Assembly (NCBI GenBank): GCA_904063045.1
Contig: CAJFCJ010000002.1
Span: 744,001-808,000 of the forward strand
Direction: 5' to 3'
Origin: Dimorphilus gyrociliatus
Lineage: Eukaryota > Animalia > Annelida
Length of the DNA: 64,000 bases
The translations under genes and the position numbers were made by a program. The notes beneath the pieces are model-generated. The model had not been told where the DNA came from, did no database searches, and saw nothing but the letters and a program-made list of their open reading frames with translations. Positions 29,736 to 37,771 of the stretch are shown in pieces (the stretch's first letter is position 1; each line of letters starts with the position of its first letter).

Positions 29736-31343
29736 ATGAAGCAAAGACGGTCTAAAAACGATATTCGTCGGAAAGCTGAAATATTTTGTCGGACTACCTC
29801 GGCCCACGGCTTAGCTCAATTTATTCGGGAATCTTCGTGTCCCAAAAGAATTTTTTGGATGGTTATCTTTATCGTAGCGGTAATAGGCAATATGACCCAT
29901 TCCCTTTTGCTATTTGTACAATATTTTAAATATGAGGCAACGGAATCAAGCACAATAGTTAATGAGAATGCCGAGTTTCCGCATATAACTATATGTAACA
30001 TTGATCCTATGTCTTCGACGAATATCATTGAACTATTAAGCAATAAAAGTTCACGAACATACAAATATGACGTTTTCCAAAGGGAACAGTTTGATACTTT
30101 GGCTAAAACTTATAATAAATCTCATCTAACTGCTCGTGTACAAAGTTGGCATGCATTCTACGAAAATATTGGTGAAGAAGAAATCAGGCGAGCAGGTCAC
30201 TCTCTTCCTGACTTCGTTGTTCATTGCCAATTTGGAGCTAGCAGAAAAGAATGTAACTTAAAGGAAGATTTTGTCGCGTTTACAAACCCCTCCTATTTTA
30301 ATTGTTATATATATCGACCGAAGCAACCATTGCGTGTCACAAGATCGGGAGCACAATATGGCCTATCATTGATCCTTTTTCTCGAAGCAACGAATGGAAG
30401 TGTGCATCCCGAAGTTTACAATGCGTTCAGCACTATTGGTAATTCAGCCGGTGCAAGAGTTTCGATACATGCACCATCTGAAGTAGCCGATCCAACAGGT
30501 GATGGTTTCGATGTGCTACCTGGGCATTCTACTACGATAAGTCTTGAGCAAGAATTTATCACTCGTTTATCAAATCCCCATGGTAACTGTACTGAAGAAA
30601 TAAAAACTACAATGTTTGGCTATCAAGTTCCGTTTACAATGTGCCTAGACTATTGTATTCAAATGATATATGTTAAGAAGTGCGGTTGCAAAACTCCTTT
30701 TCTGCCGATCACTAATACCGAGAAGGAAATTCCGTTTTGTGGACAATATGATCCAAACGAGTCAACTGAAAATTATTTTCATCGGCTTGAATGTGAAACA
30801 GAGGTATCTAAGAGGATTGATGCATTTTTCGATAGGTCCAGATGCTCATGCGCTCCCTCTTGTGAAAGTGTAGAATACTTTCCAATAATTAGTCAAAGCA
30901 AATGGCCTTTGGCTAAAACAGAGGCCTCTTTTTACGAAAAATACGTAAAAGAACGTCGCGACAAAAGTCAAATAAAATCTTTCACTACCTTAAGGAGTAT
31001 CGATTTTAAAAATCGTTTGTTACGTAGTAACGTGATTAGAAGTAACTTCCTTAGATTAAATATTAATTATAGAAAACTGACTGCTCGAAAGAGAGCTCAA
31101 GTCCCATCTTACGCATTGGCAAACTTATGGTCAGATGTTGGCGGAACATTTGGATTATGGGCTGGTGTTAGTGTGATAACAATAACAGAGGTCACAGTTC
31201 TCACATTGGGAGTGTGTTCTAGCTTATGCTCGAGAAGGAGAAAGCAAATCAGGGAAAAAGACCATGCTAGGCAAATTAATTCATTAAATGGCTATATACC
31301 AGTCTATAAAACGCAAACGGAAATATATGATATATCAATATAA
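29736..31343 (+). CDS. DEG/ENaC-family sodium channel subunit (FaNaC-like clade), intronless
   Basis: TSAHG motif, TM1 (RIFWMVIFIVA), FPHITICN, Cys-rich thumb, GLSLILFLE, RLNINY, TM2 DVGGTFGLWAGVS with the GxS filter. Confidence 0.93.
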   Translation: MKQRRSKNDIRRKAEIFCRTTSAHGLAQFIRESSCPKRIFWMVIFIVAVIGNMTHSLLLFVQYFKYEATESSTIVNENAEFPHITICNIDPMSSTNIIELLSNKSSRTYKYDVFQREQFDTLAKTYNKSHLTARVQSWHAFYENIGEEEIRRAGHSLPDFVVHCQFGASRKECNLKEDFVAFTNPSYFNCYIYRPKQPLRVTRSGAQYGLSLILFLEATNGSVHPEVYNAFSTIGNSAGARVSIHAPSEVADPTGDGFDVLPGHSTTISLEQEFITRLSNPHGNCTEEIKTTMFGYQVPFTMCLDYCIQMIYVKKCGCKTPFLPITNTEKEIPFCGQYDPNESTENYFHRLECETEVSKRIDAFFDRSRCSCAPSCESVEYFPIISQSKWPLAKTEASFYEKYVKERRDKSQIKSFTTLRSIDFKNRLLRSNVIRSNFLRLNINYRKLTARKRAQVPSYALANLWSDVGGTFGLWAGVSVITITEVTVLTLGVCSSLCSRRRKQIREKDHARQINSLNGYIPVYKTQTEIYDISI

Positions 31344-31380: not shown

Positions 31381-32328
31381 TTAAAATACAGCAGTATTTT
31401 CATTAAATGTAACTGACTTCTTTTCTATCTTATTTCTTGCCGAGTATGGTGAACTTGAAAAACCTGCTGAGGAATGAGAGCTTGCACTGGGTGTAGGCAG
31501 AGAACTCATTTTTGACAAATTCCAAGAGTTTCCTTCAAAAAAACTAATGTTTCCCGGATCTGTGTACAAAAAAGTGTAAAGTTAATATTCTTATTCTTCT
31601 GAATAAAGTTACGGACCCGGAGGAGTTGTCCATTTACTTGTGGTTGAAGTCGGAGAATCTAAATGTGCCATTTCGTCCTCAGAACTTTTCTCTTCTTCAT
31701 TTTTTTTTGTTTTGCACCTTTCCTTATGTTTTAACAATGACGTAGATCGAGTAAAAGTTAGAAAGCAATTTTCACATTCAAAAGTAATTCCGTATCTTCT
31801 ACCTCCGGATCCTCCCAACGGTCGTCGACTTGTTTTACGTACTCCAGCTCTAATGGTAGAACTTAGATTTTTTACCGGAAAAGGTGATAAATCTTTGTCC
31901 TCTTGATCATGCTTTTCGTCTACGTTTTGCTCATCAAATTCAACTTCGTCAGACGAGATTGCGTTATCATTAATTGTATATCCATCACAAACCTCTTTTT
32001 CTGGATGACTTTGCAAACCCTTTGAAACCAAAGCATATTTTGTTTTTTGGTATGACATACTTCTTGGTTGACAATACAAACCATCTTCATAGGGATTCAT
32101 AGATACATACGCGTAGTTGTCGAGTGTATTTTCAACATTTCGAGGACAAGTTTGTGTTTTTCCTTCATTATAAATTACTCTATCCGCTAAATGGATCACA
32201 TTCGTTTTCTGGTCTGTCGAAATAAATATCGCACCATGTATATTAAGTTGGGTACTACATTTCGTCTTCTTGATTATAACATCTATAATTTCTTTGCGGA
32301 TTTCTCCTGAATCACTTATAATTTCCAT
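31381..32328 (-). CDS. Single C2H2-like zinc-finger protein with a compact N-terminal alpha/beta domain, two exons
   Basis: FECENCFLTFTRSTSLLKHKERC (CxxC...HxxxC finger); basic RKTSRR linker. A 57-nt intron at 31616-31560 (GTCCGT...ACACAG, phase 1) joins the two ORFs in frame. Confidence 0.72.
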
Positions 32329-33487
32329 ATTGAGGACTAATAGACAAACACTGTTAGTTAATGTTAAATTGAAAACAAAAGCTTAAGCTGTGTGAGTATT
32401 AACCTGAAATAACTCAAGTTATTTATTAGTCTTTATTTCATTATATACTATTATTTTTTTTATATTAAATATAGATTAATAGAAAAAAACATTATATATT
32501 AGTATATAGTATTTTTATTAAAGCTTGGTATGAATTGATAGCTAAAAAGTAATATTTTAGCATGTGTACTGTGAATTATCAGATATGAAAATTTTTACCT
32601 TTGCCGTTAATGTAATCTTCCTTTTGTCGATTAAAAATATGCACTCAAATGACAAGAGTATTTTCATCAAATGAATCATTAAATAACTTTTACGTCTGTA
32701 AGTTATCAACCATAAGCATAGGTATAATAAAGTACAAACTTTTACAGCTTAAATTTATCAGTCGTTTCTTATCTATCTCCTTACGCCAACTCTTTACTCA
32801 TTTGGGTGGTAATATGACTTACAATGTAAATATAGGCATGTTAAAGAATGAAACGAATAGAAATAATATATAAAATGCTAATGCTTCGTGGCTTTATAAC
32901 AGCTATTAGTATATATACACCTATGTACGTTGTAATTTTCTAAAATGGTTATGCCTAAACATTGTTATGATAAAAATTTGAAATAAACAAGTTAAATGAG
33001 GCTAAATCGCTAATTACAGTGAAGAATATGTTTGTGAGGAAAGATCTGCGACAGTCTAAAAAAGAAAATTAAGTATGATATGGCAAAATCAATATTTCAC
33101 AGTTGTACACCATGAAGAAATTTCGAAGTCAGAAAGATATGAGTTTTACTAAAATAGCCAGCCTAACTATTTATGTTTGATAAATGAAGAACTGGTTGTA
33201 TATAAATTATTCACATACTTATAAAATATCATTAATGCATCCTCTAAAATAAAGTTTCAAATAAATCTTCGTGACAACAAATATTATAATTGAAATTTTT
33301 AAAACTTAAATAAATTCCCTATGGAAAATTTCAACCAGGGCCCGATAAATTGATATAGTACTTTTTTAAAAAATATTAAAAATTTCTGTCTTTTGAAAAG
33401 ATCTCTAACAAAGAGAATCCGCTGTGTAGGAATGACATCAAAGAAAAAAAAGGTTCACTTGTTACATTTCAATAATATCGTATAACC

Positions 33488-35421
33488 ATGTTTAAACAAT
33501 GTAACAGAGTATTACTATCTCGGTACTTCCTTTAAAATTGAACGATTTCAAGGATGAATGTCGAATGGGTATAGTAAGGAGAGAAGATGCCTCATATTTA
33601 GTAGTGGCTAAAGAACGTAAAAAACTTTTTCGAGAAAAAGTAATGGATATAAAGCACATTAAAGTAAATGAAAAGTTATACTTTATTTGGAATGAGGTTA
33701 GAAACTCTTAATAAATATATAAATATCTCACTAAAATTCGTAAGCAGAATTCATATATTTTTGTGAAATTATCGAACAAGAAGAAAGAAGAATTTTTGAA
33801 ACAATTACTACTGAAAAATTTAAAACCGTTAACAAGCAAGAACTCCTTGCAACAGGTTGAGACTAATGAAAAGCGTCTTGATAACTTTATACCGCAAGCT
33901 CCTCCACTGGCAAGCTCTATTATTCCAAAGGCTCCACCTGTTAACCTTGACGACTTAACAGGTCCAGCTCATAAAATTTCTAAGGAAGTTAATAATGAAC
34001 AGAAAAAAGAAAATCTTACACAAGCGTTTGCAAATGCTATAGAAGGTTTTGAATTAACAAAATTGAAAAAAGTAGATAGTGAGAAAGCACACAAACCACC
34101 TGCTTTCGATCCTGCTAGAGACATAGTTGGATTTGATAAAGGAAAGTTAAAAAAAGTAATACTACAAGTTCGAAGCAGAGATCAATGGAATGGTAGTAAA
34201 CTTGCAGGAGTAATGGTAAAAACACTATCTCATAATAAAAACGATATATATTTCAAATATTAAATTAGTAATTTGCTTACCAATAACAATTGTAGCTTTA
34301 AATCTTAAAAAAATTTTACCAGTTCCACGGAATCATTTTTTAGGCCACGATAATTTAAATTTCAATAGCTCATTGATGAAGTATTCATATTACTGCAGGG
34401 GGACCTGATGGATAAACTTCAACATCGTAGGAAACATTTAGGAGGTAAGAGATAATGGCAAGTTTTCAGGTTACTAATGACTTTAAAAATGTAGATGATA
34501 GTGAATCAGATAAAAGCGCCTGGAGTGACAGTGGTAAGACAATTTTTTTACGTGTTACCCCCAATAAATTAATAAATCAACAGCCACCAAAGATGGAAAG
34601 CAAATATTCTTCGTCGGAAAATCTTCAGCAGATGCATCATGAAGTGAAAGAGAGTTTAGTTTTTTAGAATAAATCATAAAACACTACCCTAGCATAGTTA
34701 AACAACCTTCACATGAAAATAAACTCATATTTATATGAAAATTTGAAAATTCAAAAGACTTTTAAAATATAACAACCTTGAATCATATTTAATAATCTAG
34801 TTTAACTATATACTTGAAAAGCGCTCGAATAACAATTTCCAATATGTTCATTTAAGTGAATCATATTTCATAAAACGAATAATGAGGGAAACATATACTT
34901 TAACTAAATACAATATCTGTCAATTAAGTCTTAGTTAAAATTATTTAGTATAAAAAGTTAGGTGACAATGGACAATGGAGAAGTTGAAATAGAAGGAAGA
35001 TCGGATAGAGCAAAGTTTTACAAGGGTATGAATATTTAATAGGTCTGGTTTTCATAAAAAACATGTTCATTTAGCTGAAAGTGGCGATACCGGATCACAG
35101 ACTTCCCTTGTGGATTTAGCTACCATTCCAGAAAGACGAAATAGTCTCTGCCCACCACCATTTCCTGGCTATAAACCTAGAGCGAGTTTTCAGGTGTTTG
35201 TTATTAGCGTTATTAATTTTTATATATCAATTTCTTGATTTGTTTCTGTATATATTTAATAGCTTGATCAGCCTATTGTAATGGATGACACAAAATTAAA
35301 AGATAAAAGAAAGAAATCAACATCGTCTGTTAAAAGTATATCATTTGAAGAAAACTCAGAACCCACTTGCTCTTGTCTGGGATCTAGAAAGCGAAAGAGC
35401 ACTAAAGTAGAACCTGCATAA
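33488..35421 (+). CDS. Tandem WH2/beta-thymosin-repeat protein with Pro-rich linker and candidate alternative exons
   Basis: Manual model: 33488-33508, 33553-33696, 33748-34155, then one of 34399-34444 / 34470-34533 / 34962-35025, then 35075-35193, 35263-35421; all phases are compatible. Repeats IEGFELTKLKKV and IVGFDKGKLKK(V) match the thymosin F-D-K-x-K-L-K-K pattern. The first mini-exon is the weakest part. Confidence 0.65.
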
Positions 35422-35657
35422 ACGCCTTAGTAACGTTCACTATTAAGTTAATTAAATTTGTCTTTTTTTTGGCTTATGGAGATTTACACATTTTGTGGAA
35501 TAAATATATAAACATATCAAATATTTTTAAAGGTACAAATAACTGAGTAGCAAAACATTCTAGTTTCTACAGTTCCGTTGACTGTATTTTCGCCCTCCAC
35601 TCAGTGATATTTAGTTGTCAATTCTTTGAGTTTTGGATTTTATAAGCAGTTTCTAAG

Positions 35658-36640
35658 ATGAAACCGCATGAGAAGGAAAAAAAGTTTAAACCATTGACTG
35701 CTCGTATTCTTGATATCGATGATTTAATCAGAAGCTATGTTAAGAAGTATGATTTTAGTCCAGAACACAGGAAACTAGCAAATCTAGAGGTATACTATCA
35801 AATGTCCAGCTAATTAAGAATGCTAAAATTGTCATTATATATTACAAACAACAAGCACTATTTAATTATAATTTCGAAAATGTTGTTGATTTAGGTAAAG
35901 AAAGAAGATGTTAGCTTCAAGTACTTTAGGCTGGTTCATGACAAAATCTGCTATCCGGACAAAGATGATATAACACAAAAGAGTGGCTTCAAAGTTTTGC
36001 CTGATAAAGTAACTCTTTGCACCGCTTCTTTTAAAAATGATACTGGCAGCCCCCAAGTAAGATTACGTTAATAAATGTCAGATTAATCCATCCATTTTCA
36101 TGGCAGATTTTCCACTTTAACGCTGAGAGGAAGACTAAATCAATAACAAAAGTTTCTACAGATGAAATGTACAAATTCGAAATGCACTCGGAATTAAAAT
36201 TTCCAATTCTTCCAGGCATGGGAATGGAGGCTAATGTTGGAATGAGAGGGGAATGGAACTTAACAGAGAACTATGAAGAAACTGTTGAAGAGGAATTTAC
36301 ATGGTCTGTAAATAGCGATGTAAAAGTTCCAGAGAATACAGAAACAATTGCCTCACTAGAAATTGTTGAAAATCAGTTTGAGGGTCAGTGGAAATTGAAA
36401 ACTTACTTCAAGGGGAGAATTAGTATCGCAGTGAAGAATAAAAACAAACCTGATGAGGTTGTAACAACAATCACTTTTCCTGTTGCTCATTTTGTTCAAC
36501 TAGGTGGAAAGTATTTTCAGGAAGATGACAAAGGGATCTACTTTACAAGCACTGGGTGGTGTAAAAGTCGTTTTGCGACTGATCAACAAGTTAACTTGAA
36601 ACAGTCTAAACTACCGGCGACATCTGCAGTGCAAATGTAA
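35658..36640 (+). CDS. Aerolysin/ETX-MTX2-like beta-pore-forming-toxin-fold protein (275 aa, 3 exons, no signal peptide)
   Basis: join(35658-35789, 35895-36056, 36107-36640), all phase 0. FKNDTGSPQIFHFNAERKTKS, an alternating amphipathic hairpin (FEMHSELKFPILPGMGMEANVGMRGEWNL) and TWSVNSDVKVP are typical of the ETX/MTX2 core. Confidence 0.8.
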
Positions 36641-36947
36641 ACCTTCTCCCAAGATTATATCAAACTCATTTAATTTCAGTTATTAGTCTAAAATAAGTTG
36701 TAGGTTTTCCAATTTGATATGATTAAATTAATTTTGCTGTTAATTGGAGACGATAAATAAATTTTTCTCTAGTGGTGCTATCTATATAGTTATATGTGCA
36801 AGTGCAACAATAAAAATTTGATTATCCTTCTTAGTGCAATGCAATGTATTAAGAATAGAGAAAAAATGTTGAATGTCATAGACTTGACATTGCTGTCTAA
36901 AATTTCTTTGTATCTACTGAATATAGCAGCCACCATACCTACTGTTA

Positions 36948-37771
36948 TTATTTCAATTCTGTCATTAATTCTGGATCCTCTGTTTCTAAGCCGTCTTTTA
37001 GTGAATCTTTCCAGCAAAGATGCCCATTTAGTTTCTTCAAACGTAGTATTATAACTCCGTCTTGTTCCTAAACTTAAAACGTTTTACTTAAAGCTTAATA
37101 AATAAAAAGAAATTTACTTTATCGATAAGATCTGGATCTGGTACAATGAAATCAAATAATTTAAGAATTTCCAATTGATATCTGCTGTCTAAGGGAGACG
37201 ATGATTCTTCGTACGGGTCTATTGTTAGTTTGAATGACCTAATTTGTGTGGAAAGTTGTTTATACAAGTTTACTTTAGGATGTTATCTAGAGTAGCTTCT
37301 ATTACATCAAACAATTATTCTATTATACAATGACGAATTAAAACCAAAAAATTGTATAGCTAACAAGTACAAACCTTTCATTTGGGAAAGTTAGACGTGA
37401 AATTGCGTTTGGGCATTTTGTTCCTTTTAGCTTACAGCAAGTTCTAGAATCATATCTATAATTCGGTACTATCACTCTAACTTGAATGCAATCTCCAATA
37501 TCTTTTGAGTCTAAAAATTGTGAAACATTATTGAAATATCGTTTTGTCACTTTTTTGAAAAGCAAACATTGTTAGGTAATAAGAAAGAAGTCTATATGCA
37601 TTATTTGTACAAGAAAAGGTAGGCCTTATAATTTTCTTTAAACTATCCGTCAAAATTAATATTAAGCGACTCAGATTTTTCACTAAAACATCATTTCTGA
37701 AGTTCAAAATCATACAAACCGAAAGCTGGTTCTTTATATCCTTTTTTTTTCATTTCAATCTTTTCCGACAT
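36948..37771 (-). CDS. CS-domain (p23/CacyBP/SGT1-type) protein, 142 aa, four exons; missed by the ORF track
   Basis: join(37771..37720, 37510..37375, 37238..37118, 37067..36948) with GT-AG introns in phases 1, 2 and 0. The product contains PAFDSKDIGDCIQVRVIVP...FPNERSFKLTI...YQLEILKLFDFIVP...VIILRLKK....CWKDSL, resembling the CacyBP CS core (FTERSF...Y.M.V.NL..PI...V.ILCRKK...W). Confidence 0.6.

Follow-up and report, generated by a model that had tools for sequence, protein, structure and literature searches.

We analysed a stretch of 64,000 nucleotides (nt) from the annelid Dimorphilus gyrociliatus (assembly GCA_904063045.1, contig CAJFCJ010000002.1, positions 744,001 to 808,000 of the forward strand), hereafter called the window, which is AT-rich, with ~31% GC, and of animal origin. 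On its + strand, from position 33432 onwards, lies a small gene of five exons, whose predicted product combines an N-terminal domain, a short proline motif, two thymosin-type WH2-like motifs and a tail encoded by two micro-exons with C-like and A-like motifs. A first-pass annotation, generated by a model from the letters alone, had recognised here an actin-regulator-like gene with thymosin-type WH2, C-like and A-like motifs, and in this it was right; the exon structure, the conservation of the parts and the order of the motifs, described below, suggest a layout close to that of the WASP family.

Exon structure of the gene

The largest exon of the gene is a 166-codon open frame without any ATG, and is 100% identical to part of the public protein DgyrCDS1086 of D. 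gyrociliatus (CAD5111816.1, 339 amino acids (aa); P0001 in our exhaustive HMMER search). Since its open frame offers no ATG, this exon must be spliced to an upstream one and, for the same reason, the intron at 33697-33747 is needed. The ATG-less frame, together with its conservation in a second species, shows that the locus is coding sequence and not a product of chance. The gene model reads 33432-33452 / 33508-33696 / 33748-34215 / 34399-34444 / 34495-34533 and gives a product of ~255 aa up to the conserved WSDSG, the final splice, between the C and A exons, being predicted from the orthologous locus of another species (L001). Its features are the following:

33432..33452, + strand: exon 0, with the start codon; its basic tip, MTSKKKK, matches P0001/DgyrCDS1086 over the first 7 residues; the orthologue has MQSKKMK, then a 52-nt intron.
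33508..33696, + strand: exon 1, beta-rich body of the N-terminal domain (residues 8-70), 51% identical to L001:9755-9943.
33697..33747, + strand: phase-0 intron of 51 nt, GT..AG; the orthologue intron, of 48 nt, has the same position and phase.
33748..34215, + strand: exon 2, covering the C-terminal helix of the domain, the linker, the proline motif, both LKKV motifs and, up to its AGVM end, a conserved spacer; 100% identical to P0001 residues 71-226.
33889..33942, + strand: short proline motif IPQAPPLASSIIPKAPPV, core IPxxPPLxSSxIP, from the pairwise alignment with IPLPPPLPSSMIPE of the orthologue.
34039..34074, + strand: thymosin-type WH2-like motif 1, IEGFELTKLKKV, one of the two stretches of a sub-threshold Pfam Thymosin match.
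34120..34158, + strand: thymosin-type WH2-like motif 2, DIVGFDKGKLKKV, the best Pfam Thymosin stretch (profile positions 7-20 of 39).
34216..34398, + strand: phase-0 intron of 183 nt, seen as an RNA joint whose ends are GT..AG; in the orthologue an intron of 118 nt occupies the same place.
34399..34444, + strand: micro-exon C, 46 nt, GDLMDKLQHRRKHLG, a putative amphipathic basic helix, 69% identical to L001:10563-10608, also of 46 nt.
34445..34494, + strand: predicted phase-1 intron of 50 nt, donor GGAG/GTAAGA, acceptor tgtAG/AT, after the 56-nt intron of the orthologue.
34495..34533, + strand: micro-exon A, 39 nt, (D)DSESDKSAWSDS(G), acidic, serine-rich, with one Trp; the orthologue has a 39-nt exon, (E)DSDSDRSSWSES(G), then TAG.
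34534..34674, + strand: 3' stretch, in which read-through would add 44 codons up to TAG 34665-34667, with AATAAA at 34668-34673; the RNA-like contig 34398-34674 runs through it unbroken.

The peptides on which the first-pass annotation was built were all found in place on the + strand, including IEGFELTKLKKV at 34039-34074, IVGFDKGKLKKV at 34123-34158, GDLMDKLQHRRKHLG from 34399 and DDSESDKSAWSDS ending at 34532; its exon boundaries, instead, had to be redrawn. It began the gene at 33488, where an ATG opens a dead frame of 15 codons; the ATG that is conserved in both species is the one at 33432, and exon 0 is followed in D. gyrociliatus by an intron of ~55 nt. A donor directly after LKK, at 34155, proved to be unsupported, since RNA contigs and the orthologue both use 34215/34216 (ATG/GTAAAA), 60 nt further on. 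The acceptor at 34470, through which the acidic, Trp-bearing tail had been reached, was rejected as well: it would leave an intron of only 25 nt (34445-34469), compared with a genome median of 66 bp, and a stop two codons on, and the orthologue differs from it, pointing to an acceptor AG at 34493-34494 and an intron of 50 nt.

We placed the 50-nt intron there because no other splice would keep C and A in frame; it also reproduces the intron and the 39-nt exon of the orthologue and, with the AG at 34493-34494, C runs directly into A (...AGVM-GDLMDKLQHRRKHLG-DDSESDKSAWSDS-G). The two VCA-like tails that had been taken for alternatives are consecutive exons in both species, and form one continuous C-then-A tail. 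A further candidate, in which the C exon is read through to a GGKR-stop and thus becomes the terminal exon, was dropped, as the orthologue shows an in-frame A exon.

Conservation in a second species and RNA evidence

When 1.84 billion protein representatives were searched with HMMER, the gene itself was accompanied by a single match, P0002, an open reading frame (ORF) of 150 aa with 29% identity. P0002 sits in the syntenic locus of another species, which also holds a degenerin, an opposite-strand zinc-finger gene, an aerolysin-like gene and an innexin. The loci L001-L004 are identical, so that one comparison species underlies all the conservation figures. In L001 the exon series and its phases are those of D. 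gyrociliatus, namely start exon, domain exon, large exon ending ...VVTVM/GT, C and A. The large exon is followed, after the 118-nt intron, by a 46-nt exon encoding GDLIDKLQLRRQCLI and then, after the 56-nt intron, by the 39-nt exon, where the stop comes one codon after WSES-G.

Whole-protein identity between the two species is 40%, compared with 96% for the degenerin, 79% for an aerolysin-like exon and 68% for the zinc-finger gene; the rate of non-synonymous change (dN) is 0.51 for the present gene and 0.02-0.21 for three neighbours, and its ratio to the synonymous rate (dN/dS) carries no information, given the saturation of synonymous sites in this comparison. Taken part by part, identity amounts to 43/92 in the N-terminal domain, 15/64 in the linker (the least conserved part), 5/29 in the first LKKV motif, where the orthologue has no LKKV, 18/36 in the second LKKV motif with its spacer, 10/15 in the C exon and 9/14 in the A exon. 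The differences in exon 1 are distributed as 25/6/36 over the three codon positions. The C exon shows 6 synonymous and 5 non-synonymous codon changes, and the A exon 5 and 4, including a serine codon switch between AGT and TCA. From these codon-position and synonymous-change patterns we conclude that both micro-exons are translated in the frames given above. The possible 44-codon read-through tail of D. gyrociliatus is not conserved in L001. On this comparison, the conserved core of the protein would consist of the domain, IPxxPPLxSSxIP, one WH2, C and A.

The degenerin/ENaC gene (Pfam ASC), which is intronless and lies at 29736-31343 (L001:6100-7710), keeps its protein identity despite the saturated synonymous sites, in contrast with the 40% of the gene under study, three kilobases away.

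As for transcription, only one public RNA run contains the stretch, in the form of contigs, which were mapped to 32300-37000. Contigs of this kind drop rare forms and holes in their coverage prove nothing, and the evidence that they give is supportive, not exclusive. Joints with GT..AG ends were observed from 32391 to 33020 and from 34215 to 34399, and three more in the downstream gene. The second of these unites the WH2 exon with the C exon at 34399, a junction on which the first-pass annotation depended, using the donor at 34215; a joint to 34470 or to 34962 was not seen in this single, contig-only run. Unspliced contigs extend over 33020-34216 and 34398-34674 at depths of 22-28, the former retaining the intron 33697-33747, and depth is zero from 34675 to 35094, where the neighbouring bins are fully accounted for by the contigs that stop at 34674 and those that begin at 35095. 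The retention of introns could be due either to low expression with much pre-mRNA or to removal of the spliced path by the assembler. All three ~50-nt introns of the gene are retained in contigs; an intron of 50 nt in a highly expressed neighbour (36057-36106) is spliced.

On the + strand, 628 nt are left out by the joint from 32391 to 33020. The exon upstream of it lies directly against the start of the zinc-finger gene on the minus strand (ATG 32328), and the two units therefore stand head to head. Several upstream ATGs occur in the leader, which extends from 33020 to the ATG at 33432.

Domains and motifs of the predicted protein

Searches and folding were carried out on pieces of the protein. 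The N-terminal domain, of ~90 aa, includes the helix SNKKKEEFLKQLLLKNL at 33772-33822 on the + strand. Its residues 1-100 had no Pfam match at E<=10, neither to WH1 (PF00568) nor to the WASH homology domain. AlphaFold2 gave a predicted local distance difference test score (pLDDT) of 46 when the domain was modelled from a two-row alignment, and of 45 from the single sequence. By structure alignment of the second model with 48,161 chains, almost all of the 50 matches listed belonged to the PH superfold, with Z 4.6-5.7, and among those listed were PH, the EVH1/WH1 domains of Homer and Spred, PTB and RanBD. PH-superfold matches, those to Homer and Spred included, lay at Z 5.0-5.7 for these low-confidence models, and EVH1/WH1 was not preferred to plain PH domains; the ESM Atlas model of the same domain also leads to PH-like look-alikes. 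A Foldseek comparison of the first model with the PDB gave a result without meaning. The PH-like N-terminus that had been proposed in the first-pass annotation is plausible but weak: the structural matches make it probable, the models are weak, and Pfam does not add its support. A feature search in the ESM Atlas gave weak leads, to WH2, Thymosin, PH and WH1 clusters, at 0.75-0.82.

The proline region, of ~18 residues, consists of a short conserved motif without a poly-proline run. As regards a basic region with CRIB/GBD, the CRIB pattern was found in neither species, and Pfam PBD gave no match at E<=10.

The sole family-level signal comes from Pfam Thymosin (PF01290) and falls on the LKKV motifs: the ORF that contains both of them scores 22.7 bits (E 8.5e-5), a 59-aa piece 21.8 bits and the orthologue 14.9 bits (E 0.023). 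The LKKV is present, but helix and linker are of thymosin type (FDKxKLKKV). Both thymosin-type WH2 motifs of the first-pass annotation do occur in D. gyrociliatus; the upstream one is not conserved, being degenerate in the orthologue (...AFDHNELKSSKN, without LKKV), and the second is kept there as DIIGFDKSRLKKV.

The C domain's general pattern consists of three V, I, L or M residues spaced by three, an R/K doublet or triplet and a terminal hydrophobic residue (Kollmar 2012, PMC3298513). Both species carry it: D. gyrociliatus reads VMGDLMDKLQHRRKHL, and its orthologue VMGDLIDKLQLRRQCL. Taken alone this pattern is loose, appearing in 17-23% of shuffles; if a Trp within 25 residues and at least four acidic residues before that Trp are also required, the proportion is 0.04-0.18% of protein shuffles. 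The A tails, DDSESDKSAWSDSG and EDSDSDRSSWSESG, come directly after C, share the conserved Trp, and carry five or six serines; in the orthologue the stop follows at once.

A putative WASP-family-like factor and its alternatives

Since C and A are consecutive, the parts follow the order known from the WASP family, which in N-WASP runs from a targeting domain at the N-terminus through Pro, V, V and C to A; only the basic/GBD module is missing and, for this reason, the architecture is not a new one, contrary to what the first-pass annotation had proposed. We favour, with a probability of roughly 0.55, the reading that the protein would activate Arp2/3 as a compact WASP-family-like nucleation-promoting factor, lineage-restricted and fast-evolving. 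According to this reading, the N-terminal PH-like domain would place the protein on a membrane or a partner, and the conserved proline motif would likely act as a docking site of SH3 or profilin type. The conserved thymosin-type WH2 would hold an actin monomer, with a second WH2 available in D. gyrociliatus only, and the C helix, together with the acidic, serine-rich, Trp-bearing A tail, would engage Arp2/3 and initiate branching. Since a CRIB/GBD was not found, control would be exerted via localisation, partners or phosphorylation of the A-tail serines, and not via autoinhibition relieved by a GTPase. Phosphorylation by casein kinase 2 of serines in the tails of WASP and WAVE raises their affinity for Arp2/3.

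A close comparison is with N-WASP and WASP. Like them, the present protein would have, in the same order, a targeting domain of PH superfold, a proline region, actin-binding motifs of LKKV type (two in D. gyrociliatus), a helix as its C region and, at its end, a Trp-bearing acidic tail. By contrast, it has no WH1 detectable by sequence, no basic region, no CRIB and no autoinhibitory domain; moreover, its proline region is of ~18 residues instead of more than 100, its WH2s are thymosin-type, its A tail is far less acidic, the protein has about half the size, and a sequence search with it recovers no WASP. A WASP layout deprived of the GTPase-binding and autoinhibitory module is found in yeast, where Las17/Bee1 is an example of a WASP homologue. 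Kollmar et al. (2012, PMC3298513) report that most yeast WASP homologues have lost both CRIB and WAID. In them, too, control must come from partners and localisation; they differ in being of fungal origin and in combining a recognisable WH1 with proline regions of great length, whereas the present gene is animal and unrelated in sequence. The same authors (Kollmar et al. 2012, PMC3298513) proposed WAWH and WAML, which occur in amoebae and in a few further groups, as additional subfamilies of the WASP family. They are a precedent for a lineage-restricted VCA joined to a different or missing N-terminal module, but WAWH keeps the GBD and has no N-terminal domain, WAML has an IMD and a WAID, and neither has thymosin-type WH2s.

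Several observations weigh against Arp2/3 activation by a factor of this kind. The A tail is only mildly acidic, with 5 acidic and 1 basic residues in 14, and past the A motif the D. gyrociliatus frame continues without a stop over 44 codons, so that the Trp may not be near the C-terminus. The 50-nt intron between C and A is not seen spliced in the one RNA run, being retained in the contig 34398-34674, and the public annotation, with its 339-aa model, skips the C and A exons. For the N-terminal domain both models are of poor quality (pLDDT 45-46), and Z does not exceed 5.7, which makes the fold call weak and WH1 and PH not separable. The profile scan suggested by the first-pass annotation gave a Thymosin signal, which remains under the Pfam gathering cut-off of 24.8 bits and does not establish membership of that family; it gave nothing for WH2 or WH1 at E<=10, and the WH2 pattern of the WASP family (Kollmar 2012) was found in neither species. 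More generally, sequence tools provide no link to the WASP family: Pfam showed no WH1, WH2 or PBD at E<=10, exhaustive HMMER brought nothing, phmmer against the PDB sequences, run with exon 2 and with the 32-aa C-A peptide, had no matches at E<=10, and exon 2, residues 1-100 and the downstream tail, when used as queries in word-based protein searches, found the gene itself only. The first-pass annotation was thus correct in stating that, by sequence (Pfam, PDB, exhaustive HMMER), no orthology to WASP, WAVE, WASH, Spire or ciboulot is recognisable.

The alternative that survives best, and which we consider rather unlikely, is that the protein is a monomer carrier or sequesterer of beta-thymosin/ciboulot type, which does not activate Arp2/3 and in which the C and A stretches would modulate the binding of actin or bind something else. 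The thymosin nature of the only family-level signal would then find a direct explanation, as would the motifs with the short linker FDKxKLKKV, which fail the WH2 pattern of the WASP family, and the weakly acidic A tail; I-x-x-F-D-K-x-K-L-K-K-V is indeed the core of the thymosin repeat, as in beta-thymosin, ciboulot and tetrathymosin (PF01290). On the other hand, the orthologue keeps just one of the two motifs, the match covers ~14/39 of the profile positions, and the motifs lie between a folded domain and the C-A tail. A targeting domain is not known from proteins of the thymosin family; the micro-exons C and A, with 10/15 and 9/14, are the best conserved part of the present one, compared with 18/36 for the second WH2, and they stand at the end of the protein in the order that defines a VCA region.

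A second alternative concerns the identity of the main product, which could be the public 339-aa protein, where the WH2 exon is joined to 34962 and the 85 nt of C and A are skipped, the form with the VCA being minor or unproductive. This we regard as improbable, and it can coexist with the other readings. The model DgyrCDS1086 has precisely this structure, as it joins 34215 to 34962-35027, 35077-35193 and 35263-35421. Exon 35077-35193, with 85% identity and 14 synonymous versus 6 non-synonymous codon changes, is certainly coding and has no ATG of its own, and C and A, which amount to 85 nt, shift the frame of the downstream exons when they are included. However, the sole RNA joint seen from 34215 leads to 34399 and none to 34962, with no depth over 34675-35094, and purifying selection acts on C and on A, each in its own frame. 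Moreover, the exon at 34962 has the look of a separate small gene: its ATG is conserved in both species and stands in good context, upstream of it ~105 nt of non-coding sequence are conserved, and AATAAA lies at 34668.

If started at ATG 34968, the downstream unit would measure ~110 aa. Its tail reads …SLVDLA..PERR.SLCPPPFPGYKPRASFQ…, and neither relatives, in the word-based search, nor a Pfam match were obtained for it; its PPPF motif is one that we take to resemble an EVH1/Homer ligand. The conserved blocks at 34857-34961 (L001:11010-11117), namely TGAATCATrTTTCA, TAATGAGGrAAACrTATAC and TCAATTAArTC, are non-coding, lie just upstream of the conserved ATG, and may represent a promoter or a 5' untranslated region (UTR); introns elsewhere in the locus are not alignable with L001. 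On account of this ATG, of the non-coding blocks before it, of the AATAAA at 34668 and of the zero RNA depth between the two units, we lean slightly towards a separate small gene, fused on by the annotation, rather than towards a switch in alternative splicing.

The segments 35095-35193, 35263-35787, 35893-36056 and 36107 onward are united in one RNA contig of roughly tenfold depth. The last two exons of the downstream unit are thus linked to the aerolysin-like gene (ATG 35658), despite an AATAAA at ~35500 between them, which may indicate overlapping UTRs or a shared transcript.

The last alternative, a monomeric Ena/VASP-like factor acting on barbed ends, with an EVH1-like domain, a proline region, LKKV as the G-actin site and the 'C' motif as a basic F-actin helix, appears very improbable: its domain order, EVH1-Pro-GAB-FAB, does match, with Homer and Spred EVH1 among the structural matches listed and a GDLM...RRK helix that we presume to resemble the F-actin-binding motif of VASP, but neither WH1/EVH1 nor the VASP tetramerisation domain is found by Pfam at E<=10, no coiled coil follows the helix, and in its place there is a conserved acidic-Trp exon that is not known from Ena/VASP proteins.

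Returning to the WASP-family-like factor, a more speculative extension, in which we place little confidence, is that the gene represents a dinophilid-specific, fast-evolving subfamily of miniature WASP-like factors without a switch, where inclusion or skipping of the 85 nt of C and A would toggle between a form activating Arp2/3 and a WH2-only form with another, highly conserved proline-motif tail.

Even at the level of the annotation the locus has consequences, since DgyrCDS1086 misses both micro-exons and probably fuses two genes, and domain surveys of this genome would overlook an actin regulator. The gene evolves far faster than its neighbours and yet keeps the C and A micro-exons, which marks them as its functional core. 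If the favoured reading is true, D. gyrociliatus would possess a minimal WASP-type activator without a GTPase switch, in an animal and with thymosin-type motifs, and this protein would test which parts of the VCA region are needed.

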